Source: Lepidodermella squamata
Lineage: Eukaryota; Animalia; Gastrotricha
Direction of reading: 5' to 3'
NCBI GenBank assembly: GCA_047495785.1
Contig: JBLDXI010000017.1
Span: forward strand, 2,480,001-2,544,000
Length of the DNA stretch: 64,000 nucleotides
The notes beneath the pieces are model-generated. The model worked only from the letters and a program-made list of their open reading frames with translations. It was not told the origin of the DNA and searched no databases. Within the stretch, counting starts at the first letter, position 1, and every line of letters starts with the position of its first letter. The position numbers were made by a program, and so were the translations under genes. Shown piece by piece: positions 2,253 to 26,703 of this stretch.

Positions 2253-3181
2253 TCATTTTTTATTTCCAGGATTAGCCGGTTTTCCCCTACCAACGCCTGC
2301 TCGGTTTGCAGCTGCCCTCGCCGTTTGAAAGGCTATTTGACTGATGCTATCGACCAAAGAGTGAATACTCGGCGCTGGTACGTCATCTGACACACTACTA
2401 GCAAGCGAGTCACTGCTAGCTGATGAGGTGGGAGTAGAAGCTTGCCGCTGTCCTTCCATACCATTTATCATCGCCAGAGACAGAGTCATGAAAAATTTGT
2501 CCCAGACAGCGGCAGATTGCTTTCGAGCAATCGATGCCATTTCCTCCTCACTTGAACTCTGCTCTTCGACAAGACCCGAAGTTGAACTCACCGAACCAGA
2601 TTTCCTGTGACATCCTTGATAGATGACAACCCATTTTGCGTCAGGAATCGTATCGTTGACGTCGTAGATGGCGCGGCGAAAGCAACTCATCAATGCCAAG
2701 ATGTGATTAGGCTTCGCACCGTTCGTGGCGTGCCTTGCCGAGAGAGGGGTGATGAACTCGAGAAAGGCCGTTTGATCGTCGATTCTATTGACGCATTTTT
2801 CTATGGCCGATAAAACTCGACGAGAGTGATTTTTCGTTTCCCAACTATAACGGACCTTAATTAGGTATGCTCGCAATAAAACCAAAATTAGACTCTGTAT
2901 GAATGTCTTACTTCCTCCTTAGTTTTCGGCATCACCTTTTGCTCGACAAAGACTTGAAAAGCATCCTTATGTGCGTCGAATAAACTTAGGGAAATGACGA
3001 ATGCAGCAAGTTTTTTTAATGTTTCTGTTCAAACATACCTGGTGAATGCCAAAACCCCAACAAGTTCCAACTCGGGGATCAAGAGCTCGAAACTTCGTCG
3101 CAGTAGGCCGCATTCCTGCGGGGAGTAGCTATCGAAAAACCAACCATGCTCGCGACGTTCTTTCGGTCTCTGTGCCGCCAT
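2253..3181 (-). CDS. Globin g1 (exons 3181-3039, 2984-2912, 2855-2253)
   Basis: Spliced translation MAAQ..GWFFDSYSPQE..LAFTS|LFDAHKDAFQVF..KEE|VRYSWETKNHSRRVL..SARH..AVWDKFF. CD1 Phe, E7 His and F8 His present; B12.2 intron. Confidence 0.85.
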
Positions 3182-3590
3182 TGTTGTCGGGATGATGAAA
3201 GCTCAATATCTTTGGAGATTTTTGAAAACCACAGAGCTGATGTACCAGCTTATATTTTTATTGATGTGCGACTCTATATTACCAATTATTTTCGCTGCGT
3301 TGTATTTGCTAGTTATTTTAATAAAGAATTGTCAGTGTTTTATGATAATATTCTTTTAGCTAGTGAATATTTGCGCATTGAAGCACGGAAATCATCAAAT
3401 CCGCCGGTCAGTCAGCCGGAAGACTTAGTTTGACAATAAAGAAATGATTCCTGCACTCAAGTAAATCGAAATATCTTCCTACTTCAAAAGAAACCATACA
3501 GCGTTTTTGTCAGAAAATAGGTGAACAACTGGGAAATAATCCTCGGTAAAACGAAACAAAATTCTGGCCGGACGGTCACGCCTTATGCTT

Positions 3591-4335
3591 TCATTTTTCG
3601 ATTGAGTTCCGGGGTGCCTCATCTTGTGGTAAAGCTTGATCGCAACTGCTTTCTTGTGAAACATTGTCCCTGGGGAAGTTTTTCGCCGCCTTTCCTCCGT
3701 TAAAGTTAATCATCAATAAAGACAGCGATGAGAAAAATTTGTCCCAGACGGCAAAGCATTTAGGCAGCAAATTCGTTTCGTCTGTCAGTTTTTTCGCATT
3801 GAGGCTTGCGAATTCTTCATATAGCGCCTGCCTCAGGCAGCTAACCAGAACTAGCACGTCACATGGATATTCGATGAATGGTTCGTGCCGAAGAGTTAGC
3901 CCTGCGACGTATTCCAAGAGGGCTGCTCTGTCGTCCAGCCGGTTGATGCACTTTTGCAAGCCACTCCAAACTTTCAGGCCGTGCTGCCTAGTCTCCCACG
4001 AATAAAGTACCTAGATCATTTTGTCCGGTTTATTAAATGAGGAATAATTGAGAATGTTATACTTCATCACGAGTCTTCGGCAGAACAGCGTTGGAAATGA
4101 AGACAGAAAAGGCATGGCTATGAGAGTCGAACAACCTGTTGGTTAGGAAAGTGAGAGCGGATCCACTTTCATTAAATTAAGGAGGATGATTATCGATATA
4201 CCGAGTAAAAGCCGCAACGCCAACGTCGGACAGGTTGTTCATGACCTCCTGAAAGCTCTGCCGAATAATGCCGATTTCTGCGCTAGAAAACTCAGCAAGG
4301 TACCAATGTTCATCGGCAGGCACTAGCGAGGTCAT
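3591..4335 (-). CDS. Globin g2 (exons 4335-4202, 4135-4063, 4010-3591)
   Basis: MTSLVPADEHWYLAEFS..AAFTR|LFDSHSHAFSVF..RDE|VLYSWETRQHG..LTLRH..AVWDKFF. Same two intron positions as g1. Confidence 0.85.
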
Positions 4336-4975
4336 TTGTTGGATGTAGATTGGTCCGTGACGAGATGGCGAGTTAAGTAGCTTTTTTGAATTTATCGAGT
4401 CGCCCCAAATGTTTTACTTTGCAATTGACGCCCTTCAAGTGATATCTAAATCGCGATAGCCGAAGCCTTACACCTATGCTACGTTTATTTGGAAAATGAG
4501 AAGCCTAGATTTCTACCCACATAGTTTTTTCTAAGAGGTGTTTCATAAGTGTCCCTGCTTCTGTCAATGATCAAGTGCTAATTATAAATTACAGTCGATT
4601 TGTCCTGGATGCAATAGGAACAATATCGAGAGACGACGCCCGTTTCGAGCTTAGCTAGGTACCCATTATACCCATGAATAAAAAAATAAAACGATGTCTA
4701 TAATAAGGATATTTTTATTACAAAATAAAAACGCTGATAATGAAAAACGAATGAAACATAGGCACATCAGTAGGGTTTCACCTGGTATTAACTGCTAATA
4801 GCTAACATCGGTTATACTTGAAAAAAAGAAAAAAAACCTGGTCTAATCACTGGAACAACATTCGTAAGTATCTACAGCCTAACTAATAAAGTTTTCACAG
4901 CGCTAGAAATTTTACGAGTCATCACATTGACTATCAGACTCTTATTAGCTTGATAAGCAGCTGGGCTGCAAATCT

Positions 4976-7497
4976 TTAGGCGGTTGTATCTTTGAACCCG
5001 CGAACAGTGTCTTGAATCCAGCGGCCGACGAAGCAAGGCCGTGAATAGACGACATAGGTGCCCTCGTAGGTGCAGCCTCGCTGCGTATAAGACGCGATTC
5101 CATGTAGGAAATAGTTGTCCTCTCTCGCCATTTTACACATCAGAGGACCACCAGCGTCCACCTGGCACGCAGGCCGGCCACCGTTGTTCAAACCCCGAGC
5201 GCAGAGCTTACGATCAGTGTATTCGACATCTCCTAACCCAGCCTTACATGTCTGTTCGCTGGTCACATTGACTGAGACAACTTCGAGGGGGTTACGAGCG
5301 GGGTCATTGCGACGATTGCCGATCGTACGCCAGCCGATTGTCAAACAATCGGTCGGCTTGTCGTCTTCTGGTTTATCGTCGCAATCGACTAGCAGGCAAA
5401 TCGGTCGAACAGAGTCCGAGAATCTCACGCGCTCTGGGAAATATTGGTTCAAATTTTGGATGAAAGCTGAATACTGATTATCTCTCACCTCCAAGCCTAA
5501 GAAGGGCGAAGTCGTAGTCGAAATTAGTGCCGTCATAATCAGGATGGATGAAGGAAGTGTTAACAGTTACACTTCGCTCATTTCCCGTAGGTTTCGTTAG
5601 ATCGTATTCGCCAAAATGGGCCGTAATCGTAGTCAATCTAAAGATGAGAGAAAGCTTCAAATTTTACGGCGAAATGAACCGCTCACTTTTCTTGTTCGGC
5701 GGTTTTGATGCACCGAGCAGACGTGAGGATCCAATAGTCCTCGATAAGGGTAGCGCTACATGTGAAGGGCTGGATGCTTTCAAAGCTGCTCAGTTGAAGC
5801 CTGACTTGCCATGGATACTCTAGGATAAGAGCGGGCCTTGGCTGGGGAACGCGGCCAGCCGCCATCATGTTGTACTTGTTCTGACCACACTGCGAATTCT
5901 CAGCATCAGAGCTCAGCAACAAACGCGGAACCTTTTTCGGCAGTCTGATAATTGAATATTGACATTATAGCACACAATGATCAAGCTGAAGGAGCTTACG
6001 CTGCTGAAATCGGAGAGGGCAAATCCGAACCATCCGAACCGTCGGGGTTCGTGATGTAGTTATTGCCATTTGCAGCGGGGCGGCTGTTGGCGCCATTGGC
6101 GTTGACGGTGTCAATTATTACCGGTCTGACGGTTGTCCTTCGGGTCGTCCGCGGGCTGGCTCTCGTCTGCGAGTCACTCGGATTTGTAGGCCTTGCAGTA
6201 GTAGTCTCGCTTTGTTGAGTTTGCTGCGTTGTTCGAGTTTCAGCTGGTTTCACAGAGGTCGAAGGAACGCCCTGTCCATTTGTACCAGTCTGTCTCTGAG
6301 TCGTAACTGCCGAGCCACTGGATCTTGTGCTAGATGGAGAAGAATTCGAGGATGGAGCGGACGTAATTTCTCCATTTGGTCTCGGCGGCCCAGGTAGGGT
6401 GGGGTTCGAACCAGCACCTGGTCTCTGTCCGAATCCAGCTTTTTCGTCTCCAGGTAGCTCCACCAAACCCGATGTAATACCCGTAACGTTTCGAATCCAA
6501 GGCATGACATGACAAGGCCTCGAATAGATATGGTAGTAACCAGCTGGTTTGAAACACCCGTAACCGAACGAGTTCATGCCGTGTAAGTAGTACGTATTAT
6601 CAGCAGCGCTGAAACAAGATAGCGGGCCACCCAAATCACCCTTGAAATACGATAGTAATGAAAGAAAATTAAGGGAGACTTGGGAAATTTTACTCTGCAA
6701 TCGTCAACCATGCCTTGAGGATAGCCAGCGCAAGTGCGGTCATCACCGATAACGATGTCACCAGAATCTCGTTTTGAGTCCAGTGAAGTGATACAAGTTT
6801 TCAGATCAACTAGAGGCACGTTGCTTTTACGCAGCTGGTCCCAGATACCAACTGAGCTGTTGAACAAGAGACGATCCGAACCCCAACCAGCAATGGCGCA
6901 AATCGAATTTGGTGGATTCTCATCGAGGCATTCGTCGATCATGCAAATCGGTTGGATATTAGGACCGAATTGGAGGGGCTCTAAAAATACAAAAATAATT
7001 GATTAAGACAGGGACAAAAAGCTGAAAATACCGTAAACGTGAAGTAGGGCAAAGTCGTAGATTGAGGTGATTTCCTCGTACAAAGGATGGATGACGTATT
7101 TGTCGATAACAAGCATTTTTTCGCCAGGATCATTCGAAGACAGCTTAACATCACCAGCATATGCGGTTATGTCGCCGCTGAACACTGGCTCCGAGCTTCG
7201 AAGATTATGGAAAATATTGAGGTTAAAATTGGAATTTTAAATAGTATAATACTTTGAAGTGAACAGGCATGTCGCCGATGAAATTAGCCACTGCTCATTG
7301 ATAATGGAAGCAGTGCAAGATATTTGCTCCGGCGCGACTGATATTCTAACGATCCATGGGAACTCGCCCGAGCTGGCCGGGTAGCTCCCGTCACCTGGCG
7401 GAATCGTTACTGAACTTCTACCGCAAGATTGCAGCTGCGAACCAGTCGCTGAAATTAGCAGGAAGAATCCTACTAATTGGAGGGTGTCTTCCCGCAT
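4976..7497 (-). CDS. Secreted tandem two-domain S1 serine-protease homolog (non-catalytic) with a Ser/Thr-rich linker; multi-exon
   Basis: Signal-like N-terminus. Domain 1: EFPWIV, SSATC, YDFALL, GDLGGP. Domain 2: EYPWQV, TSARC, DYDFALL, VDAGGP. Short GT-AG introns join the ORF pieces in frame (e.g. 5945-5998). Confidence 0.8.
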
Positions 7498-8672
7498 GAC
7501 CTCGTAAAAATCTTGACTAAAATCTAGAGTGATAAATGTTGCAAATAGCGGGCCGATTGATAGCACGTCAAATTTCTGCTCGGTGCAAAATTATTCATAG
7601 CAGCTCTCATACCCATACTCCCGTCAAAGCGTTTGTCTTGTTTTTTTTCGGCGCAAGGGCGACAAACAGCGTGCGGTGAAAAATCGCTATTGGCTACATC
7701 GGCCCGTGCACCTGATAAAGGTGAAATATAGCAATTTCCGCCCGAGCCATTTGTTTCTGAATAGCCGAGATTTTCCGCGCCATTAAGCACGGTCGACAAA
7801 AAAATATAATGAATAAGTCAGCAATTAAAATCACTGCGCGTCAATATAAAGTCGAAGAACAAGTTTTTATTGCGTTGCGGCGATGAGAGGCTTGTGAGAC
7901 AATAAAAAAATGCAACCACGCAAAAACGACGGCTCACCTGACCGTTTTCAACCTTCGAGTGTGACGCGCTCTTCAGGGGCGTTTGTTATTATAATCTTTT
8001 CATAGCCGAAAAAACACAGTCCTCGCAATGAGGCAATAAAAATAACTGACGCACAACGATGTTGATGAAAATATGTGGCTTGTCAACTGCATAAATTCTT
8101 GATAATTAATAGGCTGATGGAGGGAGTGTAAACGACTTTTTGCGGGTCACAGGCCACTGCAATCTCGTCTGTGAAAGGAAAATCGGCGGTATTCAGGAGA
8201 TATTTAACAATTAAAAACGTGAAAAAGGACCTTAGCAACACCTGCGACGAGTTTCTCCCGAAAGTAGAACACAAATTATCTCAATATTTCGGGACACTGG
8301 TATTATTTGCAATTTAATTTCGATTTAATTTCATTTAATAGCTCGAGGTCTCGAGACGTCTCGAGAGCTCCACACGTAAATCAATATTTTCAGGCCATTT
8401 TTAGAATTTCCAGAACTCGTTCAAGATTTACCTCTGAAGAACGAGCGAGGACGGCGTGGGCGAAACCTGAAAACTGTGTTTTTGTCTTTTGCTATGGTGA
8501 ACAAGAGAGCCGTTCATGTTGCGTTACGTGCACGTTTTTATTTCGCCTACCAAGTTTTTCTCCTACACGCATCCCGGTGTTAACTAAATGATGAATAAGC
8601 AGTGGAATATAAAAGTTGCTTCGGGTTTCGCTTCAGTCACTTCAAATTATTAAACATTTTAACCGCGAAAAA

Positions 8673-9035
8673 ATGAACAGTATTATTGTGGTTTTCTCTG
8701 CTTTGCTTTGGGTTGTTAACTGTCTCGAAATCCCGCAATCTTTTGGATCAGTTCTGCAACAGCTTCCAGCAAATATATCGAACGTAATATCAATGCCAAA
8801 CCTAAATGAGCTGCCCATATCTCCATCCCTTATGTCATCTATTCCGCCTGATGTTGTCGAGAGGCTATCCAACGCAGCTTCAACAGAGAGAGTGAACAAT
8901 GGCTACAGCAGCAGACCAGTACAGACCACCCAACGCCCGGTAGCAACGAACAAACAGCCTAGGAATTCAGCAATCAGTCACCTTGGCAGTGGGTTACTAC
9001 TCACACTGTCACTTGTACTCAAACTTGTATGCTAA
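8673..9035 (+). CDS. Small (120 aa) secreted, probably GPI-anchored, S/T/P-rich protein
   Basis: Hydrophobic signal MNSIIVVFSALLWVVNC; C-terminal small residues NSA followed by the hydrophobic tail GLLLTLSLVLKLVC. Confidence 0.6.
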   Translation: MNSIIVVFSALLWVVNCLEIPQSFGSVLQQLPANISNVISMPNLNELPISPSLMSSIPPDVVERLSNAASTERVNNGYSSRPVQTTQRPVATNKQPRNSAISHLGSGLLLTLSLVLKLVC

Positions 9036-9283
9036 AGTTGCGTTAAAAAATGTAAATAATCAAAGCTTTTACTTCAATCGTTCATAAAATGGTGGCAAAT
9101 TCCAGATGAATGATATAGTCACCACTCAATTCGTTCAATGCATTTGAAAACGGAAAGTTACAATAAACTGTCTGAGATAAAGCTGTTATGGAATAATTAT
9201 AGCAAATAATTTCACCGATTTTTCTGCGATTGGAAAACCTTGGATATAGAGCGCTGTCACATTTGATTCTCACAAGTAATATT

Positions 9284-11087
9284 TTACAAGGTTATGTCAT
9301 ACGAAATAGTCACAAAAAAGGTAATGAGTAGGATAAATATATGAAAATTATGACGGCTTACGCCTTGATTAGTTTTCAGCGTTGTTACGCTTGGTTTGGG
9401 TGCGGCAGTGGTGGGGCTAATAATTGGGCCATTTGCTAAAGCCAAGGTTGTGTTATCGTCTTCTTCATCATACTGCAGTCCGTGAGGGATGACTCCTGGT
9501 GTTTTTCTGGTGTTTGATGGACTTGGTGTTTTCCTGACATAAGTTACGGCAGCTGAGACTTGCGCTGTGGTTGGCACAGCTCTGGTGGTGACATGAGACT
9601 TTGTTGTCAAGCCGGGTTTGACAGTTGTAATAGGCTCGGGGGCTTTAACGCCTTCCATTGTATCGTTGATCCAGCTCATAACTGCGCAAGGCCGCGAGTA
9701 AATGTGGTAATAACCAGAAGGCCGAGCGCATCTGAAAGAAATTTTTTGAGAGATGAATCGAACAAGGGGAATTTTATGCCGGATATTTGGCTGGGGAGGT
9801 CACTTCCTAACTAATTTAAAATTTTCTCCAGTTTTTTCCAGAGACATCTTTTTCTGTAAATTCATGTCAATCGATTAATTTTCTAGCTTTAGAATTTTCT
9901 CAAAATCACCGATAAATTTTAAATTCAATAATAATTATATTGCTGGAAAAATTCAAAACCTTAGCTTCCGCTAAATGAAAATATCAAGGAAGACATCTTT
10001 TAGCCATGACGCGAGTGGGATGCAAATTAAGAGTACTTTTCAATTCCAATCTGGGGCTTGAAATTTTTTTTTGAATTTCCTCAATAATTAGTAACCGAAG
10101 TTCCTTAAAATGGAAAATAATCCAGGCCAGTATAATTATTGCCGGCTTACCCGAAGCCGAAAGAATCAATGCCATGAAGGAAATATCTGAAGTTGCCAGC
10201 AATCCTGCAGATGAACGGAGCACCAGGGTCACCTTGGCAATCGTCAAAGCCACCTTAGAAATTTAGAAAGGAATTTTCGTTTATTATTTGTTAGACTCTC
10301 AGAAATACTCACCATCCTGAAAACCGGCACATACCATGTTCTCTGTTATCGGATACTGCCGGGTGTCGTTTTTCTCAGCTAGCCGATCGGCACAAAGCGA
10401 TTGGTCGAAAATCGGCATGATAGTTTTCATTAGTCGGCTATCGGACGGTCTTTTCGCTAATTTAGTACGCATAGAGCCCCATCCGACCGAATAACACAGC
10501 GATCCTTTGGCTTCCAGCGAACAGTCAGGCAGCAAACAAGCGGGCACGACATTTGTATCGTTATACATTTTAAGCGAAGCGTTCAGCCGGACCAACGCAA
10601 AATCAAAGTCGTAGCTTCCTTTTTTGAAATTTGGGTGTTTGATGATAGAATTCGCGGTCATCAACTGCTGATTAGCAGGCCTGGCAGAGAGTATAACTCC
10701 ACCGGATGCAATAACGGTGACATTTCGCTCGCTCTTGAAACTATATTAGGAAGATGTATTTGTCGTTTTTTTTAATTTTATCGACAAACTAACTTGTCAA
10801 AACAACTTGCACTGGTGATCACCCAATCTGCGCTAACGATCGTGCCGACGCAGTATTCGGAGCTTTGGCTGTCATTTAGACGAACAAGCCAAGGGAAGTC
10901 GGTAGGTAAGGCAGGGTAACTGCCGCTAAGCCTGGGCATCATAACCTGCGATCTGCCGCATTCTTGCTCGCTCGATAAATGAGCAAAAAATGCAACTAAT
11001 AAATTATTAAAATAATTAGAGCGGAAATTGTAAGAAAAAAATCAACTCACCTGTTAAAAGCCCCGAAAGACTCAGGGTGAATCCCAT
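9284..11087 (-). CDS. Membrane-anchored S1 serine-protease homolog (non-catalytic) with a Thr-rich stalk; multi-exon
   Basis: MGFTLSLSGLLT|VAFFAH..ECGRS..DFPWLV..ITSASC, DFDFALV, CQGDPGAP, YSRPC, Thr-rich region and hydrophobic C-terminus FHIFILLITFFVTI. Confidence 0.8.
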
Positions 11088-11913
11088 CTCAATGAAAAAC
11101 TAACAAAATTTCAAGCGAATATAATTATTATATTATTAATTATGTCTCGCTTATAATCATAGCGTGGGAAAAGTGTGTGCTATTAAATTTCATTAAGATG
11201 GCCAGATAAAAAGATAACTCGACAGATAATACAGAGGTTGAAATAAATTGCACGTGAAGCGAATCACACGCGCCTCAGTCAAGCACCTTGACGGAAAAAA
11301 GTTTCTCATGCCTCATCTATATTATGGATGATAGATGATGGGCGCGTTTCGCCTCTTGAAAATGCTTGTGAAAATAGCCCATTGAGTATCACTTTGAGCT
11401 GTCATTACTCGACACATTGTAAAGCACTCTGATACGAATAGCTGTAAACGTTAACAAGTGCGACAGAGAGGCCTTACGAGAAAGCACGCATATGCCAAGC
11501 TATACAGCCTGCTTTCCACGTCGTTGTAAAAACATTTTGTTTATTCTGATGAGGTATATAGTGTATGAGTCGTGGGTTCAAGAGCTGCTCGCTTCAAGGC
11601 TACAACATTTCTATTTTAGCTGCGTATATGCTCCTCCCGAGCTTAGTGTCGACAAAAACAGGAAAAAAGTGTTTTTCACAAACAATTTCTTTATCCCTAT
11701 TGTTAGAGCGGACGTTGTTTAGCGGCTCAGAATCAGTTAAATACCTACTTACTTCCGTTGTTTTAATGGAATAAGGGACATTCTCAAACACAATCACGCT
11801 TTTATTTTTTTTTAGAAAATCTGACAAATTAATTTCACGTTATAGGCAATCAGAGGTGGAAACATTTATTATTAAGACTAAATATGAGATTAATATGTTT
11901 TTGCTTTCATTTT

Positions 11914-13163
11914 TCATCGATTTCCTGGTTGTCGAGGAGGCCGGGTTGAGGTCAAAATCCAGTTAGTTATCGCGCAGGGTCTGGAGTAAATCCGAAAATA
12001 ACCGGCAGGCCCTCCACAGCTATAAAACAGCTTAATTTTAACGTTTGATCTTAAAAAATTAGGCCAGTTTACTCACCCGCCAAAACCATACGAAGAAATG
12101 CCGTGCAAATAAAAGCTAGGCTTGGTTCCTCCACGGCAAATTAAAGGAGCGCCTGAGTCTGTTTGGCATTCGTCCACATTAGGCTGCATGTACCCGGCAC
12201 AATTCATCTGAGGGGTCACTTGGAAATCCTGAAGGTTCGGCTTGTTTTGCAACGCAGCCTGGCAGTAAGAGCGTTCGATCGGATAGATGACTTGTTTTTT
12301 CAACCTTTCACTCAGCAAATCCTCATTGCCACCACCGTAAGATACGCGGTCCGAACCCCAACCAGCTATGAGGCAGGTAATGTTTTGACTTGGCTTCAAT
12401 TCAGAGTCACAGTCTTGCAGTAAACAAATTGGCTTCAAGTTTCGACTCCAAGTTAATTGATCTATTAACTCGCAAATATTTCAATAATAAAATTGAGTAA
12501 TAAATCAAACCGGTAAGATGCAAAAGGGCAAAGTCGTAGTCGTAATCGTTAGGATTGTAAAGAGGATGAGGAATGATTCGATCGACAAACATGAGGCGCT
12601 CATTTTGATCGGCATCGCTGATTGATAGGTCGTTGACGTAGACGTAAATGTCATCGGGATTGATCAAAGAAGAACCACGTCTTTAATACGATATGGGTAT
12701 TCATTAGGTACAGTCGAAGAAATTGTATCAGGTAACTAGCTATAGTCCTAACCAATTTAATCGATTACAAAAGAACGGTTTTTCGATCTTTCGAACTTCA
12801 GAAGAATCTAATGAAGGTTTTAATGACTTACGTGAAAAGACAGTGTGCCGCTGTGATAATCCATTGCCGCCCCAAAATTGAGCCCGTACAGCGAACACTA
12901 AGCCGAACCAGCCACGGAAAATCACCGCTTTGAGCATCGACCGGTGCGGTTCCACTCGGAATAAGAACGTCAGTTGTCCCGCAACTCAGTTCGGCCGGTC
13001 CTTGGCCGGCCGTTTGTCCAACAAAATTGATTAAACCGATGATCAAGGGTAAAAACCGAGCGGCTTCAAATGCAAACACATTAACGACCGGTTTTTTTTT
13101 TAGAAAAATTCGCGTTTTTTTATTACCTTTAACGTGCCTCAGCGCCGTATTACCGATGGCCAT
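11914..13163 (-). CDS. S1 trypsin-fold serine protease with intact His/Asp/Ser triad; multi-exon; start codon uncertain
   Basis: DFPWLV, ITAAHC, DYDFALL, CQTDSGAP, YSRPC..W; stop TGA at 11916-11914. Confidence 0.8.
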
Positions 13164-14453: not shown

Positions 14454-15147
14454 TTACTGATATTGAAGCATTTCTGCGATGAAAGTCAGCCCGAAAGTGC
14501 GGAAGAACTTCTTCCAAACATAAGTCAGCTGACTGGCGGTCATATCGCTAGAAATCGCATCACAGTTGGATGCGTAGATGGCCATTTCGCTAATCAAAGC
14601 AGTGTTCATACATCCAAATAGCGCTAGAATATGCATCGGTTTGACTTTGAATCGGACGTGACTGGCCGCCAAATCGCGAACTACGTCAAGAAATCGTTCG
14701 CTTTTGTCCAAGCGATTGAGGCATCGTTCGAAAACGTGCATCACGCGCATGCCGAGGCGGTGAACTTCCCAACTGTAGCGAACATCCTCAGCTGTCTTCA
14801 CTGATACACTTTGCGGGACGAAAAGAGCAAAAGCATCAGGGTGCTCTTGAAATAAGCTGTAATACAGATAACACTGGTTGATGAATGATGAAATCAGCAG
14901 GGATTTACCTCGAAAACGCATTAATTGTGATACTCTCCAAGCGGTGTTGAATTGATACAAAACTTTTACGCAGTAAATTAATTTCTTGTGGGCTAAATGA
15001 GTCCGAGAACCACCAACCACCCGCGTTGATAGATTCGGCGATAATGCTAGCCGAGGCAGCGCTATTCTCGCTATCAGCTCGGCTAGATCGCCCGCATTCG
15101 AATTCGAATTCCGGTGACGTAGGAGGTGTAGCCTCGGAATTTCGCAT
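14454..15147 (-). CDS. Globin g3 (intron 14857-14908; alternative start at 15258)
   Basis: GGWWFSDSFSPQE..NAFSS|LFQEHPDAFALF..YSWEVHRLG..LAASH..VWKKFF; B12.2 intron. Confidence 0.85.
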
Positions 15148-15884: not shown

Positions 15885-17417
15885 ATGCATCGAAAAATAA
15901 CGGCAACTGCAGTCTATACCTTATTGGTGTGTTGGACCGCGAATGCGGGTTTGCTCCCCGGTCTCGATTCTGTAGCTAACAACGTGATCGGTGGAGTCAG
16001 CGACTTGACCAATACCATAGCAGGCAGCGTGACTGTGGATCCGCGGCTGCCAGGCGCGAATCTGTTCAATGGAGTAATCGGAGGGCTGCAGAACCTCACA
16101 AATGGAGTAATCGGCCTTGTGAACGATACTACAAATGGTCTCAATTCATTCATAAACGCTACTGCTTATGGCTTGACGGATGGGCTAATCAAGTTGGCTG
16201 ATGGTTCAAATCCAAAACCGTCCTTCACCGCAGCGGAATTGAACCAGCAATGCAATGGGATCTTCTCGGCAGACCGAAGATGCCCGGATTTGGTCAATGG
16301 CCAGTCAAATAAAATCGGCCTATCTCTCGTTGTTGGCTCGTTCGATTCTCTCGACGATAAGGAAGAGGTTCTTCAGGTTTCGGCTACTCTAGTCTTCAGT
16401 TGGGAAATAACTAACTGTGTCATGAAAAACTGGACTTTTCGGTATCGAAATCGAGCTAAAGAGCGCGTGATTGTCCCGGAAACCCACCCGATATGGCGAC
16501 CGAAGCTCACCCTTGTAAACTCAGCCGACGATCCTCAGTTGAAGAGCACAACGATAAGCGAATCTTTTGAGGTAATCTATCAACCCAACGGCCCATTGCC
16601 TCCGCCACTCCCTCCGTCCCCAGAGATGGTGTATCCTATTAGCCTCAAGTTTGTACTGATGCGTACGGGAGTTTTCAGGACTGACTGCACTTTGAACCTG
16701 AAATCTTTCCCCTTCGACACTCAAGTTTGCAGCCTGGTTTTCCAGCTGAATGAAATATCAGCATTCACTGTATTCGACAACTCGTCTACTCGAATCTATC
16801 TGCCAGATTCGTTTTCTGACAACGAAGAGTTAGTTCTGATCAGCAACAACACGGAGCTCGTTTCGCAGCAGCCACAGTTGATGAAAAAGCTACTGCAGCT
16901 GGAAAATTACGAGGTCAGCCAAGCTGTTTTCAGCTTCGGGTTCAAGCGTAGGCCCCAATACTACGTCGTCAACCTGGTTTGCCCGTGTTTTGTCCTTGCT
17001 GTACTGGAATTGGCCATTTTCTTGCTTTCGAATGAAACTGCTGAGAGAGCAACCTTTTCAGTCACAATCTTGCTAGCTTTCACCTTCATCCAGTCGGACT
17101 TTATCAAGGAACTGCCTCGAACTCCTCAGGGTGTTCTTATGGCCGATTACATCTTTGTTCTGACAATTTATACGGGAGTTTGTAAGTTTCGCAGCTTGAG
17201 TTGTTTGAATGAAGAATTAAACAATTTATCCTACAAAGGTACCCTGCAATCTATGATAATGTTCTGGCTGCAATCAGTGGTCTTCGCTGAATCCAAGCTA
17301 AGGGTTCAAATGTGTGGCAAGAAAATTCAGCCGATGATCATTCTGGATTTCATCTGCTTTCTGGCAGCTCTTGCAGGATTCGTTTGGATAAACAAGCAGT
17401 GGGTCACTGTGATATAG
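15885..17417 (+). CDS. Cys-loop pentameric ligand-gated ion channel subunit (nAChR/5-HT3-like, divergent); probable in-frame intron 17182-17238
   Basis: Signal peptide; loop A IWRPKLTLVN; Cys-loop CTLNLKSFPFDTQVC; M1 RRPQYYVVNLVCP; M2 ERATFSVTILLA; LP.T after M2; M3 and M4 present. Confidence 0.85.
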   Translation: MHRKITATAVYTLLVCWTANAGLLPGLDSVANNVIGGVSDLTNTIAGSVTVDPRLPGANLFNGVIGGLQNLTNGVIGLVNDTTNGLNSFINATAYGLTDGLIKLADGSNPKPSFTAAELNQQCNGIFSADRRCPDLVNGQSNKIGLSLVVGSFDSLDDKEEVLQVSATLVFSWEITNCVMKNWTFRYRNRAKERVIVPETHPIWRPKLTLVNSADDPQLKSTTISESFEVIYQPNGPLPPPLPPSPEMVYPISLKFVLMRTGVFRTDCTLNLKSFPFDTQVCSLVFQLNEISAFTVFDNSSTRIYLPDSFSDNEELVLISNNTELVSQQPQLMKKLLQLENYEVSQAVFSFGFKRRPQYYVVNLVCPCFVLAVLELAIFLLSNETAERATFSVTILLAFTFIQSDFIKELPRTPQGVLMADYIFVLTIYTGVCKFRSLSCLNEELNNLSYKGTLQSMIMFWLQSVVFAESKLRVQMCGKKIQPMIILDFICFLAALAGFVWINKQWVTVI

Positions 17418-17866: not shown

Positions 17867-18676
17867 ATGGCTCAAACCAGCCCGACGGATGAGCATGATT
17901 TGCAATCAAAAAGAGCACCCGGAAACGATATGGCTCCAGGCGATGATAAGAAAAACCCGGCAACTTGGTGGTACAGCTGTGACTTATCTTCGGACGAGCT
18001 CTTTATTCTACGCAGCAGCTACGGTGCCGTAAAACCGTATCTAGAAAACGTTGCAATTGCAGCATTCACCAATCTTTTCGATCAGCGACCCGATGCCTTC
18101 GCAGTTTTTGCCGGGAAAAAGGTCATTCCGAGTACGAGGAGCGACGTGGATTACTCGCGAAAGGTGAAGCAACACGGTTTGAGGGTTCTTAGTGTCATCG
18201 AGCGTGGTCTTGATCGAATCGATAATTGGGAGCTGTTCGAAGAGGTTGTTTCGAAAGCAGCTGCCCGCCATTTGCCATACGGCGCAAAGCCAATTCATAT
18301 TCTAGCATTATTTGGCTGTATACGCGAGGCTCTTTTGAAGGAGATTGAGATTGCCCGTGCTATTGAAGACAATGGGGAACGAAATGGACTGCCATCATTG
18401 AATTTCCCGTTCGATACTAATCATTACAAACTGGGCGTCTCTGCCATCAATTCTGCGTGGAATAAATTCTTCAGAACGTTTGGTCTAGCTCTCATCGCCG
18501 AAATGTTGTCCATGCAGGATAAAATGTCCCAAATCGATGCTGGCGAGAAGGATCAGCACATTCAAAAGCGAGTATCCCTTCAGCCCGAAGGTATGCTACA
18601 TAATACCGAGGACAAATCGAACGGCAATGTTGGCGTGGTCAAAGCTATGACTGCGCGGTTCAGCCAAGGGCATTGA
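17867..18676 (+). CDS. Globin g4 (intronless)
   Basis: TWWY..AAFTNLFDQRPDAFAVF..VKQHGLRV..AARHLPYGAKP..AWNKFF. Confidence 0.9.
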   Translation: MAQTSPTDEHDLQSKRAPGNDMAPGDDKKNPATWWYSCDLSSDELFILRSSYGAVKPYLENVAIAAFTNLFDQRPDAFAVFAGKKVIPSTRSDVDYSRKVKQHGLRVLSVIERGLDRIDNWELFEEVVSKAAARHLPYGAKPIHILALFGCIREALLKEIEIARAIEDNGERNGLPSLNFPFDTNHYKLGVSAINSAWNKFFRTFGLALIAEMLSMQDKMSQIDAGEKDQHIQKRVSLQPEGMLHNTEDKSNGNVGVVKAMTARFSQGH

Positions 18677-20282
18677 GCGGAAATATTGAGACAAATTTCA
18701 GGGACTTGAACCAGACACCACGTGATGTTGTATCTAATTTAGCGAAGAGTAGCCAAATGCGAAATAATTGAATTCTTATTCGTAACTAGCTTTATTTGAT
18801 GTCATAAAGCCAATCCGTCGTGATTCTGTCTCGGATTATCTGTTCATTTTTTGAACTTGAAAAAATAAGAAATAGGACAATTAAAATGACGATGAAAGAA
18901 TCTGATTGATTTAAAAGTGCATTCTTTTCTCCCAACCAGCTTGATGTCAAACTGTATAGGCCACAGTTGATGATTTAATCTACATTAAGTAAAATTTTTA
19001 GACCGGACAGGGAATATAGAATACATCCGCTATCACGAAATCCAATCATAAAACGGGCGTTTGAAAATCACGGTCGAGTGCTGCCCGTCTAAGATTTTTC
19101 ACCTGCACATTATTTTCCAAAGGGCTTCATACGAAGTACTGCGGATAACTTCGCCTATTAATAAGGAAATTATTCTATCGAAGTACGAAATGGAAACCCA
19201 TATTATACGAAAGTGCGCTAATAGTTTTTCGCAGACCGGCATGACCGCAGACTCGAAAAAGTGCATAAACGTAACTATTTTATGCGCTTTATTATATTTC
19301 TGAGTATAAGTTTGACATTTCCGCCAGAAAATTAAAGAGCTTGCATGAGCCGGTTGAGAGCTGATTCATTCATTATTCACTCAGCAGTATAGAGTGATAT
19401 GAATCGCTTCTATCCTCATATAGCCATCATATATCATCTCTACATTATTTCTTTTCCGCCGTAAATCAGAAACTTGCAAGTTCAACTCACGACGGCAATT
19501 CCGGATCGACGATCACAAACATCTACTGCTGTCTCTTCAATGTCGTTGTCCTTATAGGAGATGTATCCGTTTGATTTATATTAGAGATCCGATTCAAGAC
19601 ATAGTAGTGTGGTTTATTTCATAGCAGTCCAAAATTCTCAGTTCAGTGGCGAGACGTATCGGTAGCCTAATTATTTTATTATTTTTATCAAAGAGGACAT
19701 TTTCTCTTGGAGAAGAATCGATATTATTATTACGGCGATAATTCATATGAGCGTATGAGCAGCTCATTACCTTGATCCTGTATAGCTTATGGCCACTTGA
19801 TCTTGTGACATTTTCCCTCTCTTCTGCTGTCTTAAATGAGCAACTGGGGATTAACAATTTTTGAAAATTCTAATGATCATGTCAGGTATATGAAATTTTA
19901 TGTAAAAAAATATGTTCCCAAAAAAGCTCATTTTTAGAGGCTCAAATAAGGGAAACACGCCGCACAAATGGGCTCGAAATGAGCTCGGACATGGCCAAGA
20001 TATAACCTTTTTACTGCTTCCTTAAACGTTACATCTTTAAAAATATCTCGGCTGCAGAAAAATCCGAGTGGGAAAAATTTATTCATAGATCTCTCAGAAA
20101 TTCATGGCGCTATGCTTCTTTTAGAATTGCGTGCGGGATATTGCGTGGGTCTTTTCTGTGTATGACTTTTGATCAATCCCATCAGAAATCTAAAAGCTTA
20201 TATTATTCTCTCAATTTTTTTTCTTGGTTTCCGGATGTTATTAGTCGCATTATACTGATTCACCACTACAACGCTTCCAAAA

Positions 20283-21152
20283 ATGTCGCAAGATACCGCG
20301 GCACATCCTGCTTCGACGGCTGAAGATGGTATTTTGTTGAATGGTCACCGATTATCTCAAGGATCTGAATCGAAGACGGCTAGTTCTGGTAAAAATCCCC
20401 AGGCCGCGTGGTGGTTCGTGTGTGACTTCTCCGCCGACGAACTCTCCATTCTTCGCAGCAGCTTTACGGCTGTTAAACACCGCTTGGAAAACGTAGCCGT
20501 CGCTGCTTTCACGAGCCTGTTCGATGAGCGCCCAGATGCATTTGCTGTATTCGTCGGGAAGAAAGTCCTACCCAGCAGCCGCAACGACGTAGCTTACTCT
20601 TGGGAGACGAAGCAGCACGGTCTCCGCGTTCTCAGCATCGTCGAAAAGTGCCTAAATCGAATCGACAAATGGGAGCAATTCGAGGATGTAGTCTCAAGCC
20701 TTGCAAAGCGGCATTTGAATTACGGCGCCAAGCCAGTTTACATTCTTGCATTATTCGGCTGCCTTCGTGAGGCCTTGCTGAAAGAGATGGAGATTAGCCG
20801 AAGTCAATGTTCGACTCCAACTGAGCCGGCTCCTTTTCCTAGCAACGGTAACCCGTTTCAGCTCAGCTTGTCACCGATAAACTCGGCATGGAGCAAGTTT
20901 TTTCGAACCCTAGGTTTAGCGTTGATTGCCGAGATGCTGTCGTTGCAAGAAAGCGGAAAGTTGACTGAAATCTACCAAAGCCCTGAGAAAAATCATGGCA
21001 GCGAGTCGTCATTGAGGAGCGATATTGACTCGCCAGTTGCAGCGAATTCCCCCAAAATCAAAGATGGTGCCAAATCGAAAAAATCTAACGAGACTAACAA
21101 CATTATAAGAGCTGTAACATCCAAATTTAATTTGAACTTGGGGAATTCCTAA
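20283..21152 (+). CDS. Globin g5 (intronless)
   Basis: AWWF..AAFTSLFDERPDAFAVF..YSWETKQHGLRV..LAKRHLNYGAKP..AWSKFF. Confidence 0.9.
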   Translation: MSQDTAAHPASTAEDGILLNGHRLSQGSESKTASSGKNPQAAWWFVCDFSADELSILRSSFTAVKHRLENVAVAAFTSLFDERPDAFAVFVGKKVLPSSRNDVAYSWETKQHGLRVLSIVEKCLNRIDKWEQFEDVVSSLAKRHLNYGAKPVYILALFGCLREALLKEMEISRSQCSTPTEPAPFPSNGNPFQLSLSPINSAWSKFFRTLGLALIAEMLSLQESGKLTEIYQSPEKNHGSESSLRSDIDSPVAANSPKIKDGAKSKKSNETNNIIRAVTSKFNLNLGNS

Positions 21153-21941
21153 AAGAAATAAGCAATATTATACTAATGCAAATTGATGAAATTGCAATGT
21201 AGAATTTTCAAAATTTAGTCTTGATTAGCTTTCACCTGATTGCAAGCTGACAGCCGAAAATTGTTAAAGAAAGATGTTCTCTATTTTATTTAATTAACAA
21301 AAGTAGGTGAGTGAGTGCCGAGAATCAGCTTATAATAAAACAGCGATTAGACGGGACACGAACCCTCGGCTTTTGCCACACATGTGACTTTGCGGTATGC
21401 AAATGTGTAACATTGGGAGAGAGGCTATGCTGTTACGATTGATTACCCGGCAGCCCACACGCATTATCGAGATTGCCTTGCCATCGATTCCTCCATGAGC
21501 TGGTTAAAAGTTGGTAATCTCTTTTAACTTGAATTGCTATTCTCAAGATATATGCTACATGAGGAACTAGAGGTTCGATAGAATCTAGATCGTGTTTCAA
21601 ATCGAGTCAAGTATTCAGTTCTTCGAAATTATTATTAGCAAAATGCATTATCCCGTTCTTCTTTTGAATATAATGGCGATAATGCTCCCACTAGCTCGGA
21701 ATATTATTAAATTTTTCGTCCTATATTAAATTACTGAATTGTATTTTCCGCGTTTGCTTTTATAACGGCTTGCCGCTCGTCAGATCACCCTTCAAAAATT
21801 AATTGTCCGGGAATGTATGAAATAACGTTGCCTCTGACATATACGGAGCATATTGATTCGAATGGCACTATAGCCAGTGAATTTTTACATCTAAACGACT
21901 AGCCGCTAAAGTTATATTATACACATCCTGCAGTCCATATA

Positions 21942-22849
21942 ATGACCTCGCCGGAAACATCAAGCCATCATCAGCGGGCCTGGTGGTTTATTTGCGATTT
22001 CTCCGCAGTCGAGCTTGCTATCCTCCGTAGCAGCTTTATAGCAGTGAAAAATCGGCTGGAGAGCGTTGCGATTGCGGCGTTTACCGAGTAAAAATTATTC
22101 TAAAACGTACTTCAATTTCAATTTCTGGAAAATTTAGCCTGTTTGACGTCCGACCTGACGCCTTCGCTGTATTCGTAGGTGCTAAGGTTCGGCTTATAAT
22201 ATAATTTATTTGGCCGATTTAACAATTTTCAACGCTAGGTTCTACCGAGTACTCGAGACGAAGTTAGGTACTCGTGGGAAACTAGACAGGTAAAACCCGC
22301 TTAATTATTCGAATTAGTTTCTCATCGATTTGCTTCAACGTTAAAAGCACGGTCTTCGAGTGTTGAGTATTGTCGAGAGGTGCCTCAATCGCATTGACAA
22401 ATATGAGCTGTTCCAAGACGTTGTCTCCGGCCTGGCCGCTCGACATTTATCCTACGGCGCAAAGCCGGTTTATCTTCTGGTAAATTTCACAAAGTTGAAT
22501 TTTTTCATTTTATATTTACTTTACTTCCAAAAAGTCTCTGTTTGGTTGTTTAAGGGAAGCGCTGCTGAAAGAAATGTCATCGCCAGATGAAAAAATGTCG
22601 AGTGAATACAGCGCTAATGATATTGCTGTCGCTTGGAATAAATTTTTCCGAACTCTCGGCCTCGCTTTCGTTGCTCAAATGCTTGACCTGGAAGAATCTA
22701 TAGCAGTCAAATTGCAGCAGAGCAACAAATCGGAGGATTCACCATCTAGGAACTCGCCGTCCGAACTGCGAAATAGGCCACTTCACCGGAACAACTCCAC
22801 GCGGAGTACTCGCAGCGATCGTGGCCAGGCAGCGGGGGCGAGGCAATGA
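21942..22849 (+). CDS. Globin g6 (introns 22088-22137, 22187-22238, 22290-22347, 22480-22534)
   Basis: Spliced product closely matches g5: AWWFICDFS..AAFTD|LFDVRPDAFAVFVGAK|VLPSTRDEVRYSWETRQ|HGLRV..LAARHLSYGAKPVYLL|SLFGCLREA. Confidence 0.9.
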
Positions 22850-23410
22850 GGCGGAGAATTGTTGTCTTGAAATCTCTGGCTACCTTTCAACTAATTCGAA
22901 TCTGTCAGTGTTAATTACCGATGAAACTCCAAGTCCGTGTTAAATTATATTACATACACAATATCCGGCAATTAAAATGTTACGCAGTCATCTGCACTCA
23001 GATACCTTTTATTATTAGAGAAAAATTCAAGTCATCAACATTATTACTGAATATAAAAACGGTTTCCTCGATGCGACCAATGTCTTTTTTATTCAAAAGC
23101 ATTGCTTTGTCCAAAAATCAAAATTCAATTAAACACGCTTTCACAAAATATACCTACATCAGGAAATTTTAGACTCCCTAAAATGCCCCGAAATCATTTA
23201 TCGAGTATAGTCGAGAATTCCAAATTCCAACATCCCAGCGGTATAATGTATAATTTATGCTAGTATTTGTGCTCGTTGATCATGAATAATCCCAAGAAGT
23301 GGAAAAATAGCCATCTTACGGGGAGTAATAGTCCCAGAAGCGAACACAATATCAAACAGTTTTAGGAATTTGGTGAAATTTTCAAAGTTTTCAGAAGTTG
23401 AACATAGTGG

Positions 23411-24179
23411 CTACTTCGACCCTGTTTCGCGCGAAGGTGATAGATCAGATATAAGACTAGATTTCGGGTCGTCACTTTCAAGAATCGACGCGCTCGATGG
23501 AACAGTAGGGCATCCATTAGCAACATTTTTTATCCAACGATTCGGCAAAACTTGGATCTGTTTTTTATCCGAACCGCACACTCGCAGGATATCGGCTACG
23601 AATGCCAATCCAAGGATTCGAAAAAACTTGGCCCATACTTCAGTAAAAGTTATCGCATTTGCTTGGGAACAGAATTTTGCAGCAAATGCAGTCTTGAAAC
23701 AGCCCAGCAAAGACTATATTATCATAAATCATAAATAGGAATTTAACTAGAGTTATGAGGCAATCAGGTAGTATTACCAATATGTCCAATGGCTTCACAC
23801 CGTATCGAACGTGAGTTAAAGCTGTTGTGCGAACAATTTCAGCAAATTCAGGTTTCCCCAGCCGGCTGAGACATCTCTCGAAGGCATGTAACACGTGAGT
23901 GCCGTGACGGCGGGTCTCCCATGAATAAGCAACTTCATCTCGCGTCGTCGGCAGGGTGTGATTGCTCGTGAAAACGGCAAATGAATTAGGATGAAGATCG
24001 AAAAGTTGCGTAAATGATGCGACAATTATTTCATCACTGCTGAGTTTAATTATCTCGAAGCTGCTGGTGAGTAGTGCCATCTCGGTCTGACTTACATCTT
24101 CGCAAAGCAGCCACCAATCGTCAAGGTCACTTCTGCGGCTATTACAGCTCAAATCGGCGGAACTCTGTGCTGTTTCCAT
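23411..24179 (-). CDS. Globin g7 (intron 23714-23777, G7.0)
   Basis: DWWLL..ASFTQLFDLHPNSFAVF..YSWETRRHG..ALTHVRYGVKPLDIL|SLLGCFK..VWAKFF. Confidence 0.85.
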
Positions 24180-24646
24180 CGCGTCGACACTTTGATCACT
24201 TGTTAATAATATCTTACTTCGCACTGCGGAAACGGTTAAATATTATCATCAAATTAACTGCTATTAGCCAGTAAAGGTCGACGAAAATTAAGTATATAAA
24301 ATGTCACTGACATCTATTATAATGCTCAGTCTGAGCCTTATTTATATAGGAATCTTTCAGCCTTTTCAAGCCTTATTAGCTAATTTTTTGAACTATAATA
24401 AGTCAGTTCGCCCTTTAACATGCCTCAATCGAAGTTGATCGCTGTGAATCACACCGACGAGAGTGCGAGGGCGGAAGTAAAAGATCGATTAAGGTGGTTG
24501 CTGAGCCGGTCATTTTTGTCAGCAATTAAGCTACCTTGCGACTGTTTGCGCGAAGCCAATCAGGTTTGGCGTATAATACCGCAGCGGTGTATATTGACTA
24601 GATCCATAAATCATAGCTTCGAAATCAAATATTTTCAAGAAGTATT

Positions 24647-25209
24647 TTATTTTAGGGCTTGTTCACATTCCATTTCAGTTATAACAGCCAAAGCCAGCAT
24701 ATTAAAGAATTTTCCCCACTCAGGCGAACTGATTTGCTGAGAATCAAGTCTCGCCGCAATTTCATTCTTGGTGCAGCCGACCAGGTCGAGCACGTGGCGA
24801 GCTCGAACCTTATGCGTCAAGAAATCGGTCGCCAACTCGCGCGAAACGCTTACAAAAGCGTCGCAATGGTGGATTCGGCTGAGCAGCCTTTCGACCGAAT
24901 GCAGCATTTGCTGGCCAACGCGCTGAACCTCCCAACTATAAGCCACGTCGTCGCTCGATGGCGTCAAGTGTGGCGTCTTGACAATGGCCGAATAGGAGTT
25001 TGGGTTCCGGTTCAGTAACCTAAAATTGATAATCATTTTCTGAAGTCTCAAGCTTAATAATTCTTTGATAAAAAATACCTGACAAATATTGAAGTTACCA
25101 AGGGCTGAAAGTACATTTTCAGGCTTCCAAAAGACTGCCGCAGGGATGTCACTTCATCAGGCGTGAAGTCAATGAAAAACCAGTAGTCACGGTCACAATT
25201 ATTAGCCAT
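24647..25209 (-). CDS. Globin-fold protein g8 lacking haem-ligand residues (intron 25020-25078, B12.2)
   Basis: MANNCDRDYWFFIDFTPDE..SIFVR|LLNRNPNSYSAIV..VAYSWEVQRVG..LATDFLTHKV..EWGKFF. ORF intact and colinear with g1-g9. Confidence 0.75.
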
Positions 25210-25736
25210 TTGAAATCTCCAGAACTGCAAATAAAATTCTCTGCGAGTAATACGAACAAAAATTGAAAATATGTTTTTCGAGCCGCCGATATTAGTCCCT
25301 GATTAGTAGCATATTGTCGTCATTTTATATCCTCTCCTCGATGCCGAACTCGTTATAGGCCGATTTGCGCTGCAAATTAAATCAGCTCACAATTAAACGC
25401 ACGCTTTGTCATCCACCGGCTTTATATCGATTTTCCATTACTAAATAGCAGACAGCAGACTAAAAAGTAAGATCATCGAATTTTGCTTTCCCTATTTTGC
25501 TGCGCATTAGACGGAACTTACATGAAAATTATGTGACCTGGGATCAAGCTTATCCGCGGCGAAGCCTAGGCAATATAGATATAAATTTTGAACAAAAAAT
25601 CACGAACCAAATTTAAACAAAAAAGACAATTTTTTACTCATTTAAAAGACAAATTCTATCTAAAAATCAATTAGATCAAGGTAATACTCTCAAGTTCCGA
25701 GTTACTATAAGAATTCCCAACCAGCGAGAATAAAAT

Positions 25737-26703
25737 CTAATGCAGAGTCATCCGACGCAAATGTTCAAGTGACGGTAGAGCAGCTAGTGACATATGACGT
25801 CCGGAATCGTTTGAACCCTTTCTTTCGCTCGATGTTTCGCAATTCGAATATCGATGATTTAGCTGTGCCTTTTGCACATTGGGTGATTCCGCCGCGCTTG
25901 AACTCGAGCTATTCGACCCCAAAGCAGACATAGTAGCTATAAGGCCAAGAGAAAGGGCGGCATAGAATTTATTCCAAGCATTCGCGCAAGCAATTTTAAC
26001 TGCAGCATCATCCGACGTTTTGCTGCCATTTTCATCTCCGTTCGTCTGAGGTAGGGCTTGATGCCGATCTGACCACTGAGCTTCAATTTGCTTCCAGGTT
26101 GCTTCTCTCAAGCAACCAATAAGAGCCTTGAACAGGAAAATAACCCTAAAATGCGTGCTTTAATATTAGGCCATTCTTACCAAAATATGGCTGCAATTGG
26201 CACCATAATTCACATGTCGCGCTCCGAGTTCTTCCACAAAATTCCTATAGGCTTCAGCGTCTTTGATGCGGTTCAACGCCCTGATGAGAAAGATCGTTTT
26301 ACATGAAAAAAAAAGTGGTAAATATTAAAGCAAACTTTTCAATGGAGTGAAAAACTCGTAGACTATGCTGCTTGGTCTCCCACGAGTAGTAAACCTCGTT
26401 TCTAGTTTCCGGCAGGACACTTTTTCCGATGAAGACCTTGAATACATCCGGGTACTCGTCGAACAGCCTTTAAAATTTTAAAAGGAAAGATTGCAAGGAA
26501 AAATGATGAATTCGTCAATTTTACTTGGTGAATGCAGTTGTTCCAACGGTGCTGAGATGCGGTTTAATTAGGGCGAAGGAGTAGCGAAGTAATTTCACAT
26601 CCGCATCCGTGTAGTAACTGGTTCCACAAAACCACCAGCAAACGCTATCCTTCTTCGCATCTGGAGTCGCGTTTTCCGGGGCACATGCGATTTTTTCAGT
26701 CAT
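25737..26703 (-). CDS. Globin g9 (introns 26468-26524, 26281-26335, 26126-26180)
   Basis: CWWF..TAFTK|LFDEYPDVFKVF..YSWETKQHSLRVFHSIEK|ALNRI..LGARHVNYGANCSHIL|ALIGCLRE..AWNKFY. Confidence 0.85.

Follow-up and report, generated by a model that had tools for sequence, protein, structure and literature searches.

The 64-kb window of Lepidodermella squamata DNA analysed here (that is, the whole stretch of 64,000 nucleotides (nt)) holds nine intact globin genes, g1 to g9. We read them, with a probability of roughly 60%, as a cytoplasmic branch of the membrane-type (globin X-like) globins that is confined to one lineage; they would most likely be bis-His hexacoordinate globins of redox, nitric oxide (NO) or O2 chemistry, and the cysteine at helix position E18 would not be a sulfide adaptation. 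The analysis itself shows how the genes are built, that at least four are transcribed, that the proteins are constrained, their fold and residue patterns, and where they fall in a tree. The genes would add to the poorly understood membrane-type globins an undescribed subfamily that is cytoplasmic and has a Cys fixed at G11; a literature search found no paper on gastrotrich globins.

Searching the window by tblastn with three globin open reading frames (ORFs) as queries, we found nine globin loci, every one within 2253-26703. Gene models were built by hand, by reading three frames across each locus and assembling the exons by script, and 9/9 gave uninterrupted frames of 167-289 amino acids (aa); the introns are 50-66 nt long with GT-AG ends, four of them in g6 and none in g4 or g5. 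The Pfam family Globin (PF00042, cut-off 22 bits) was matched above its gathering cut-off by 6/10 submitted ORF pieces, which come from g3 (38.9 bits), g4 (36.8), g5 (36.5), g1 (30.3) and g7 (25.2), and g2, g6, g8 and g9 were tied to the globins by tblastn and alignment. The genes lie at 2.2-4.3 kb (g1-g2), 14.5-15.1 kb (g3) and 17.9-26.7 kb (g4-g9), and trypsin-like protease genes and a divergent Cys-loop channel gene sit among them, which rules out a strict tandem array. Hence, the nine-gene array of the preliminary description holds for nine intact globin genes and not for an unbroken array. The genes, with landmarks within g5, are listed here by window position.

2253..3181, minus strand: g1, 272 aa; exons 3181-3039, 2984-2912 and 2855-2253; His E7, Cys E18, His F8 and Cys G11 (gene model, Pfam Globin, alignment).
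3591..4335, minus strand: g2, 208 aa; exons 4335-4202, 4135-4063 and 4010-3591; His E7, Cys E18, His F8 and Cys G11 (gene model, alignment).
14454..15147, minus strand: g3, 213 aa; exons 15147-14909 and 14856-14454; Leu E7, Arg E10, Cys E18, His F8 and Cys G11 (gene model, Pfam, alignment).
17867..18676, plus strand: g4, 269 aa; intronless; His E7, Gly E18, His F8 and Cys G11 (ORF, Pfam, alignment).
20283..21152, plus strand: g5, 289 aa; intronless; reference protein for the searches and the AlphaFold2 model; complementary DNA (cDNA) contig over its 3' part.
20409..20417, plus strand: pre-A Trp-Trp-Phe motif of g5, residues 43-45; a short extra helix in the model; present in degenerate form in 9/9 genes.
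20649..20651, plus strand: Cys E18 codon of g5, residue 123, 11 after His E7 (residue 112), by the alignment and by an ungapped neuroglobin alignment.
20760..20762, plus strand: Cys G11 codon of g5, residue 160, 16 after His F8 (residue 144); fifth residue past the G7.0 intron position of g6, g7 and g9.
21942..22849, plus strand: g6, 230 aa; five exons, 21942-22087, 22138-22186, 22239-22289, 22348-22479 and 22535-22849; introns at B12.2, in the CD region, at E7.0 and at G7.0; ortholog of relB, a gene of a metagenome relative.
23411..24179, minus strand: g7, 234 aa; exons 24179-23778 and 23713-23411; G7.0 intron; intact in strain X1.
24647..25209, minus strand: g8, 167 aa; exons 25209-25079 and 25019-24647; Val E7, Phe F8, Ile CD1 and Leu E18, with Phe B10 and Cys G11 kept.
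25737..26703, minus strand: g9, 266 aa; exons 26703-26525, 26467-26336, 26280-26181 and 26126-25737; Ala E18; ortholog of relC, from the metagenome relative.

To compare residues, we used a MAFFT alignment with g5 as the index. In agreement with the preliminary description, every one of the nine genes has Phe B10 and Cys G11, and g1, g2, g3, g5, g6 and g7 have Cys exactly 11 residues past E7 (E18); Gly (g4), Leu (g8) and Ala (g9) take its place in the remaining genes. E7 is His in 7/9 genes (Leu in g3, Val in g8) and F8 is His in 8/9 (Phe in g8), so the diversification at E7, E18 and F8 that had been noted earlier was likewise found in the alignment. The proximal His F8 occurs with Phe CD1 in 8/9 genes (g8 has Ile CD1), and His E7 and His F8 occur together in 7/9. 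Seven members have the full hexacoordinate-type pocket of Phe B10, Phe CD1, His E7, Arg/Lys E10, Val E11 and His F8. From its residues, g3 probably has a pentacoordinate, open apolar pocket (Leu E7, Arg E10) and g8 probably binds no haem.

The helix numbering is fixed independently of the alignment by the canonical B12.2 and G7.0 intron positions. The B12.2 intron (phase 2, in the codon two residues past Phe B10) is present in g1, g2, g3, g6, g8 and g9, and the G7.0 intron (phase 0, five residues before Cys G11) in g6, g7 and g9, as well as in two orthologs in the metagenome relative. In the HMMER alignment to neuroglobin, helix G is preceded by a gap of four residues; when the sequences are aligned without gaps from His F8 onward, the Cys falls at G11, in agreement with the G7.0 intron and with the pattern of hydrophobic residues. 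Further introns are found in the CD/D region (g1, g2, g6), at E7.0 (g6, relA) and at E17.2 (g9, relC). We also observed intron turnover among close paralogs, from none in g4/g5 to four in g6, whose ortholog in the relative (contig L001, 5162-5937) retains G7.0 only; the non-canonical positions E7.0 and E17.2 are common to both species.

The proteins had been called Cys/Trp-rich, which is overstated, as Cys makes up 0.7-3.0% and Trp 1.5-2.3% of residues. What is conserved instead is a set of positions: the pre-A Trp-Trp-Phe, a Tyr-Ser-Trp-Glu that precedes helix E, a Trp where helix H begins, and Cys G11. The longest G-H loop insert of the set, plus a Ser-rich tail, is found in g1. The lack of a signal peptide was upheld: the N-termini are hydrophilic, with a maximum 10-residue hydropathy of <=1.7 that is reached only in helix A, and no stretch of the nine proteins reaches the hydropathy of a trans-membrane segment. 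The lack of an N-terminal acylation motif was upheld too, with a Met-Gly start in 0/9 genes. An upstream in-frame ATG in g3 (Met-Gly-Pro-Ala-Ser) was considered as an acylation signal and rejected, because Pro follows the Gly and the Ser/Thr at the position required by the myristoylation motif rule is absent.

Among proteins of solved structure, the best relatives of g5 by sequence are neuroglobin (E = 1e-4, 21% identity) and also cytoglobin. A homologue search with g5 returned none at E <= 0.001, and a feature search of the ESM Atlas gave generic globin clusters only. An exhaustive HMMER scan of 1.84 billion cluster representatives with g5 gave 98 matches; the close matches among them, at 43-67% identity, are unnamed proteins of metagenome assemblies in ENA. 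The named matches are either multidomain globins (echinoderms and one dinoflagellate) or single-domain proteins, at 22-25% identity; the latter come from Nucella, Priapulus, Crassostrea, Ramazzottius, Paramacrobiotus, Hypsibius, thrips, Ptychodera, Aplysia, Biomphalaria, Candidula, Pomacea and Potamilus and are mostly called 'neuroglobin-like'. Nearly all of these single-domain outgroup proteins have Phe B10, Phe B14, Phe CD1, His E7, Val E11 and His F8, and 32/51 start with Met-Gly, many with Met-Gly-Cys. Such Met-Gly(-Cys) N-terminal acylation has been described for globin X and globin X-like proteins (PMC7771090).

A tree of 69 proteins was built by maximum likelihood (g5 matches only, unrooted and without labelled reference clades). 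In it, the nine window globins group with the metagenome proteins on one side of a split that has a support of 98 in the Shimodaira-Hasegawa-like approximate likelihood ratio test (SH-aLRT), as a single clade with a stem of 0.98. Within it, g6 pairs with relB (SH-aLRT 88) and g9 with relC (SH-aLRT 98) as orthologs, and g4 and g5 are sister paralogs. We modelled three genes of the relative (relA, relB and relC), whose contigs keep the synteny of a Cys-loop channel gene followed by globins, in compact, intron-poor genes. Members of the clade were met only in the L. squamata window and its metagenome relatives. Hence, the lineage-specific intracellular globin subfamily that had been proposed was supported as one clade with metagenome relatives, transcribed, constrained and free of signal peptides. 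A second cluster of the metagenome relative (contig L003, 8087-10624) holds three clade members, one of which (P0014) starts with Met-Gly-Lys-Tyr followed by four Cys; acylation loss therefore did not reach every member of the clade.

The nearest named single-domain homologues of the nine globins are the globin X and X-like proteins (clades II-IV; Song et al. 2020, PMC7771090). Both groups have Phe B10, Phe B14, Phe CD1, His E7, Arg E10, Val E11 and His F8, frequent Cys E18 within Val/Ile-Glu-Lys-Cys, and B12.2 and G7.0 introns. Unlike globin X and X-like proteins, however, the nine globins lack Met-Gly(-Cys), have Cys rather than Gln at G11, stand at 20-25% identity on a long stem, and add the pre-A Trp-Trp-Phe helix, the Tyr-Ser-Trp-Glu, a longer G-H loop and disordered tails. 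Vertebrate neuroglobin and cytoglobin, compared by similarity only, are the best solved matches by both sequence and fold and have the same hexacoordinate-type pocket and intracellular location. Neuroglobin has a central E11.0 intron, which none of the nine window genes has (0/9), and cysteines at CD7, D5 and G18/19 rather than at E18 and G11.

The fold was assessed by modelling g5 with AlphaFold2 on an alignment of 56 rows. We found 154 residues with a predicted local distance difference test score (pLDDT) >=90 over the globin domain, with helices A-H and a short extra helix at residues 42-46 over the Trp-Trp-Phe motif; the G-H loop (residues 177-195) has low confidence and the N-terminal 40 residues are disordered. 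A Foldseek search with this model placed neuroglobin and cytoglobin on top, with template-modelling scores (TM-scores) of 0.72-0.82 on the target, and gave a probability of 1.00 against neuroglobin, cytoglobin, myoglobin and mollusc haemoglobins. The disordered C-terminal tail ends in a helix (residues 270-283, window 21090-21131) whose sequence is conserved in g4 (about 18640-18670) and relA. On the model, this helix of g4, g5 and relA could serve in docking or membrane binding, as a substitute for the lost acylation.

As cDNA evidence, we used the public run X2 over the stretch g5-g9; a loose end in this run is presumably the SMART cDNA-synthesis oligonucleotide. Contigs of X2 cover the 3' part of g5, as well as g6, g8 and g9, and leave the intergenic stretches and g7 uncovered. 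In g6, we found one splice joint at which 58 nt with GT..AG ends are skipped, and three loose ends marking two further introns. All three introns of g9 appear as joints that skip 54, 55 and 57 nt, with the minus-strand equivalent of GT-AG. Hence, at least four of the nine genes are transcribed (4/5 in the stretch examined).

Pairwise comparison of the paralogs gave proportions of synonymous differences (pS) of 0.77-0.93, which is saturated, versus proportions of non-synonymous differences (pN) of 0.21-0.48; we report pN and pS instead of dN/dS since synonymous sites are saturated in every pair. Saturated synonymous sites with limited amino-acid change point to old duplications and constrained proteins. 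Relative to the DNA run X1, apparently from another strain, the window has 14 synonymous and 3 non-synonymous coding differences (5 synonymous to 1 non-synonymous in g7 and 2 to 0 in g8). Insertions and deletions relative to X1 lie in introns and spacers, apart from one net in-frame change in the g7 tail. As g8 is transcribed and its strain differences are synonymous only, it may be a haem-free globin-fold protein.

These observations suggest a course for the family. The clade would have lost the N-terminal Met-Gly(-Cys) acylation signal and become cytoplasmic, and would have gained the short pre-A Trp-Trp-Phe helix, a longer G-H loop, disordered N- and C-terminal tails and the invariant Cys G11. 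In the seven full-pocket members, haem would most likely be bound by bis-histidyl coordination, and these proteins would take part in intracellular redox chemistry or sensing of O2, NO, nitrite or reactive oxygen. For globin X, neuroglobin and cytoglobin, such roles have been put forward but only in part tested (PMC7771090).

Several points weigh against reading the genes as a cytoplasmic, bis-His offshoot of the globin X-like proteins. Haem binding, coordination state and physiological role are inferred from the sequence. Being unrooted and limited to g5 matches, the tree does not tell from which of the bilaterian clades II-IV (PMC7771090) the genes came, and the long stem permits other placements of the clade. 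The burial of Cys E18 and the exposure of Cys G11 are deduced from substitution patterns and general globin architecture, and g7 has no contigs in the single cDNA run X2, which does not prove it silent.

The preliminary description had taken Cys E18 to point to sulfide binding. The free Cys E18, together with Cys G11, would bind sulfide or form persulfides, and the genes would be the sulfide-handling system of an animal of sulfidic sediment, in the manner of the A2 chains of annelid extracellular haemoglobins (Riftia, Lamellibrachia, Arenicola). As to position, the analogy holds: in siboglinid A2 chains, a free Cys is conserved ~11 residues past the distal His (PMC6862839, PMC5117596), and six paralogs here have Cys at E7+11. 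However, the same Cys, exactly at E7+11 and within the motif Val/Ile-Glu-Lys-Cys, is present in 16/51 outgroup homologues: in Crassostrea (oysters), Nucella (a dogwhelk), Aplysia, Biomphalaria, Candidula (a land snail), Pomacea, Potamilus (a freshwater mussel), Ramazzottius, Hypsibius and Paramacrobiotus. Biomphalaria and Pomacea are freshwater snails and the last three are limno-terrestrial tardigrades; we know of none of the carriers as a sulfide specialist. In essence, then, the refuting outcome named in the preliminary description was obtained, as homologues from non-sulfidic taxa have the Cys as well; unlike the annelid Cys, it is not tied to habitat. Since the same globin family has it in oysters, snails and tardigrades, Cys E18 is no pointer to a sulfide system.

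Parsimony assigns Cys E18 to the ancestor of the core clade, with later losses in g4, g8 and g9; relC, the relative's ortholog of g9, retains it. Elsewhere in the family E18 is Ala, Val, Leu, Ser, Ile, Thr, Gly or Phe, and this spectrum marks a buried apolar position; E18 faces the same side of the helix as E7, E11 and E14. We read Cys E18 as an old, probably buried family trait. The annelid precedent is moreover not transferable, because the free-Cys argument depends on an extracellular, oxidising setting, in which free cysteines in annelid haemoglobins are otherwise selected against (PMC5117596). Annelid A2 chains are secreted, have a signal peptide and an intrachain disulfide and serve as subunits of giant haemoglobins, whereas the window globins are cytoplasmic, single-domain proteins of another clade, without signal peptides. 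Even in annelid haemoglobin, whether cysteines or zinc bind sulfide is still disputed (PMC6862839). Nor did the analysis turn up any sign that the animal lives in sulfidic surroundings. Hence, the sulfide explanation is highly improbable, and the genes give no evidence of a new mechanism of sulfide handling; the nine globins may have a generic role in redox chemistry or hypoxia.

The other conserved cysteine calls for a different comparison. Cys G11 is present in 15/18 clade members and the outgroup mostly has Gln, so it is a derived signature fixed at the origin of the clade, and the true one. We take G11 to be the position of human myoglobin Cys110 and alpha-globin Cys104, which like the window Cys are the fifth residue past the G7.0 intron. 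These human cysteines are isolated, species- or chain-specific residues of clade I globins, whereas the window Cys is invariant across an old subfamily, including g8 without its haem ligands. From this pattern, Cys G11 is probably a packing or interface residue, or a reactive thiol. The genes could accordingly encode thiol-switch globins, in which Cys G11 would be a reactive haem-coupled thiol open to S-nitrosation, haem-to-thiol electron transfer or oxidative disulfide dimerisation. Its presence in 9/9 genes, against Gln in relatives, fits this idea, and human myoglobin Cys110 is indeed reactive and S-nitrosylatable (PMC9952723). However, g8, without either haem histidine, still has Cys G11, which suggests a haem-independent structural or interface role and makes a purely haem-dependent one less likely than packing, an interface or a stand-alone thiol; we consider haem-coupled thiol switching unlikely. 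We regard as very unlikely the wider proposal that Cys G11 and the ancestral Cys E18 form a haem-coupled thiol relay (S-nitrosation, persulfidation, peroxide sensing) in an expanded cytoplasmic hexacoordinate family serving redox, sulfide or hypoxia sensing, with g8 as a thiol-only regulatory partner. An obligatory E18-G11 disulfide was also considered and found unlikely, as the E18 Cys occurs alone in the outgroup and the G11 Cys alone in g4, g8 and g9; helices E and G are not known to pack together in globins.

Two further explanations concern the number of genes. A small animal in low-oxygen water might use the proteins as a myoglobin-like oxygen store or for facilitated diffusion, with gene number reflecting dosage or tissue specialisation, and transcription of at least four of the five genes in the examined stretch accords with this. 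It is nonetheless quite unlikely: with His E7, Phe B10 and Val E11 the pocket is of the hexacoordinate type, as are the closest relatives of solved structure, and not that of classical stores, the paralogs are old and divergent with saturated synonymous sites rather than recent dosage copies, and one member is probably haem-less. That the genes are mostly decaying duplicates without function, as the missing haem ligands of g8 and the missing cDNA contigs of g7 might suggest, is scarcely credible and already contradicted: 9/9 frames are intact despite saturated synonymous divergence, strain differences are mainly synonymous even in g7 and g8, and g8 lies under cDNA contigs. A cytoplasmic offshoot of the globin X-like proteins is the reading we prefer, and the set then provides a natural test series of standard hexacoordinate-type members, a Leu E7 member (g3) and a haem-less member (g8).

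A comparable expansion is known from Caenorhabditis elegans, a tiny bloodless animal with dozens of divergent intracellular globins bearing N- and C-terminal extensions. That expansion is independent, in another lineage and with different signature residues, and no orthology with the window globins was seen. A large C. elegans globin clade is also mentioned in PMC7771090.

Among the neighbours of the globins, several trypsin-like serine protease genes lie between them on the minus strand (window 4976-7566 and 10299-13163), and the one at 5996-6700 has a long Thr/Ser/Pro-rich, mucin-like stretch past the protease domain. The divergent Cys-loop ligand-gated channel gene is one ORF of 510 codons (15885-17417, plus strand), and its ortholog in the metagenome relative (contig L001, 1162-2481) likewise lies upstream of globins. 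The region of globins, proteases and channel is bracketed by a pair of XPG-nuclease-like paralogs in inverted orientation, at 28-1789 (plus strand) and 28269-30167 (minus strand), supported by weak Pfam matches to XPG_N and XPG_I. Farther along (33076-54349), at least four ABCB-type (P-glycoprotein-like) full transporters lie on both strands, each in a few long ORFs with ABC_membrane alternating with ABC_tran domains. Two small ORFs without Pfam matches lie at 8616-9035 (plus strand) and 9284-9679 (minus strand); one has a hydrophobic N- and C-terminus and the other is Thr/Pro-rich, and they may encode secreted or anchored proteins.

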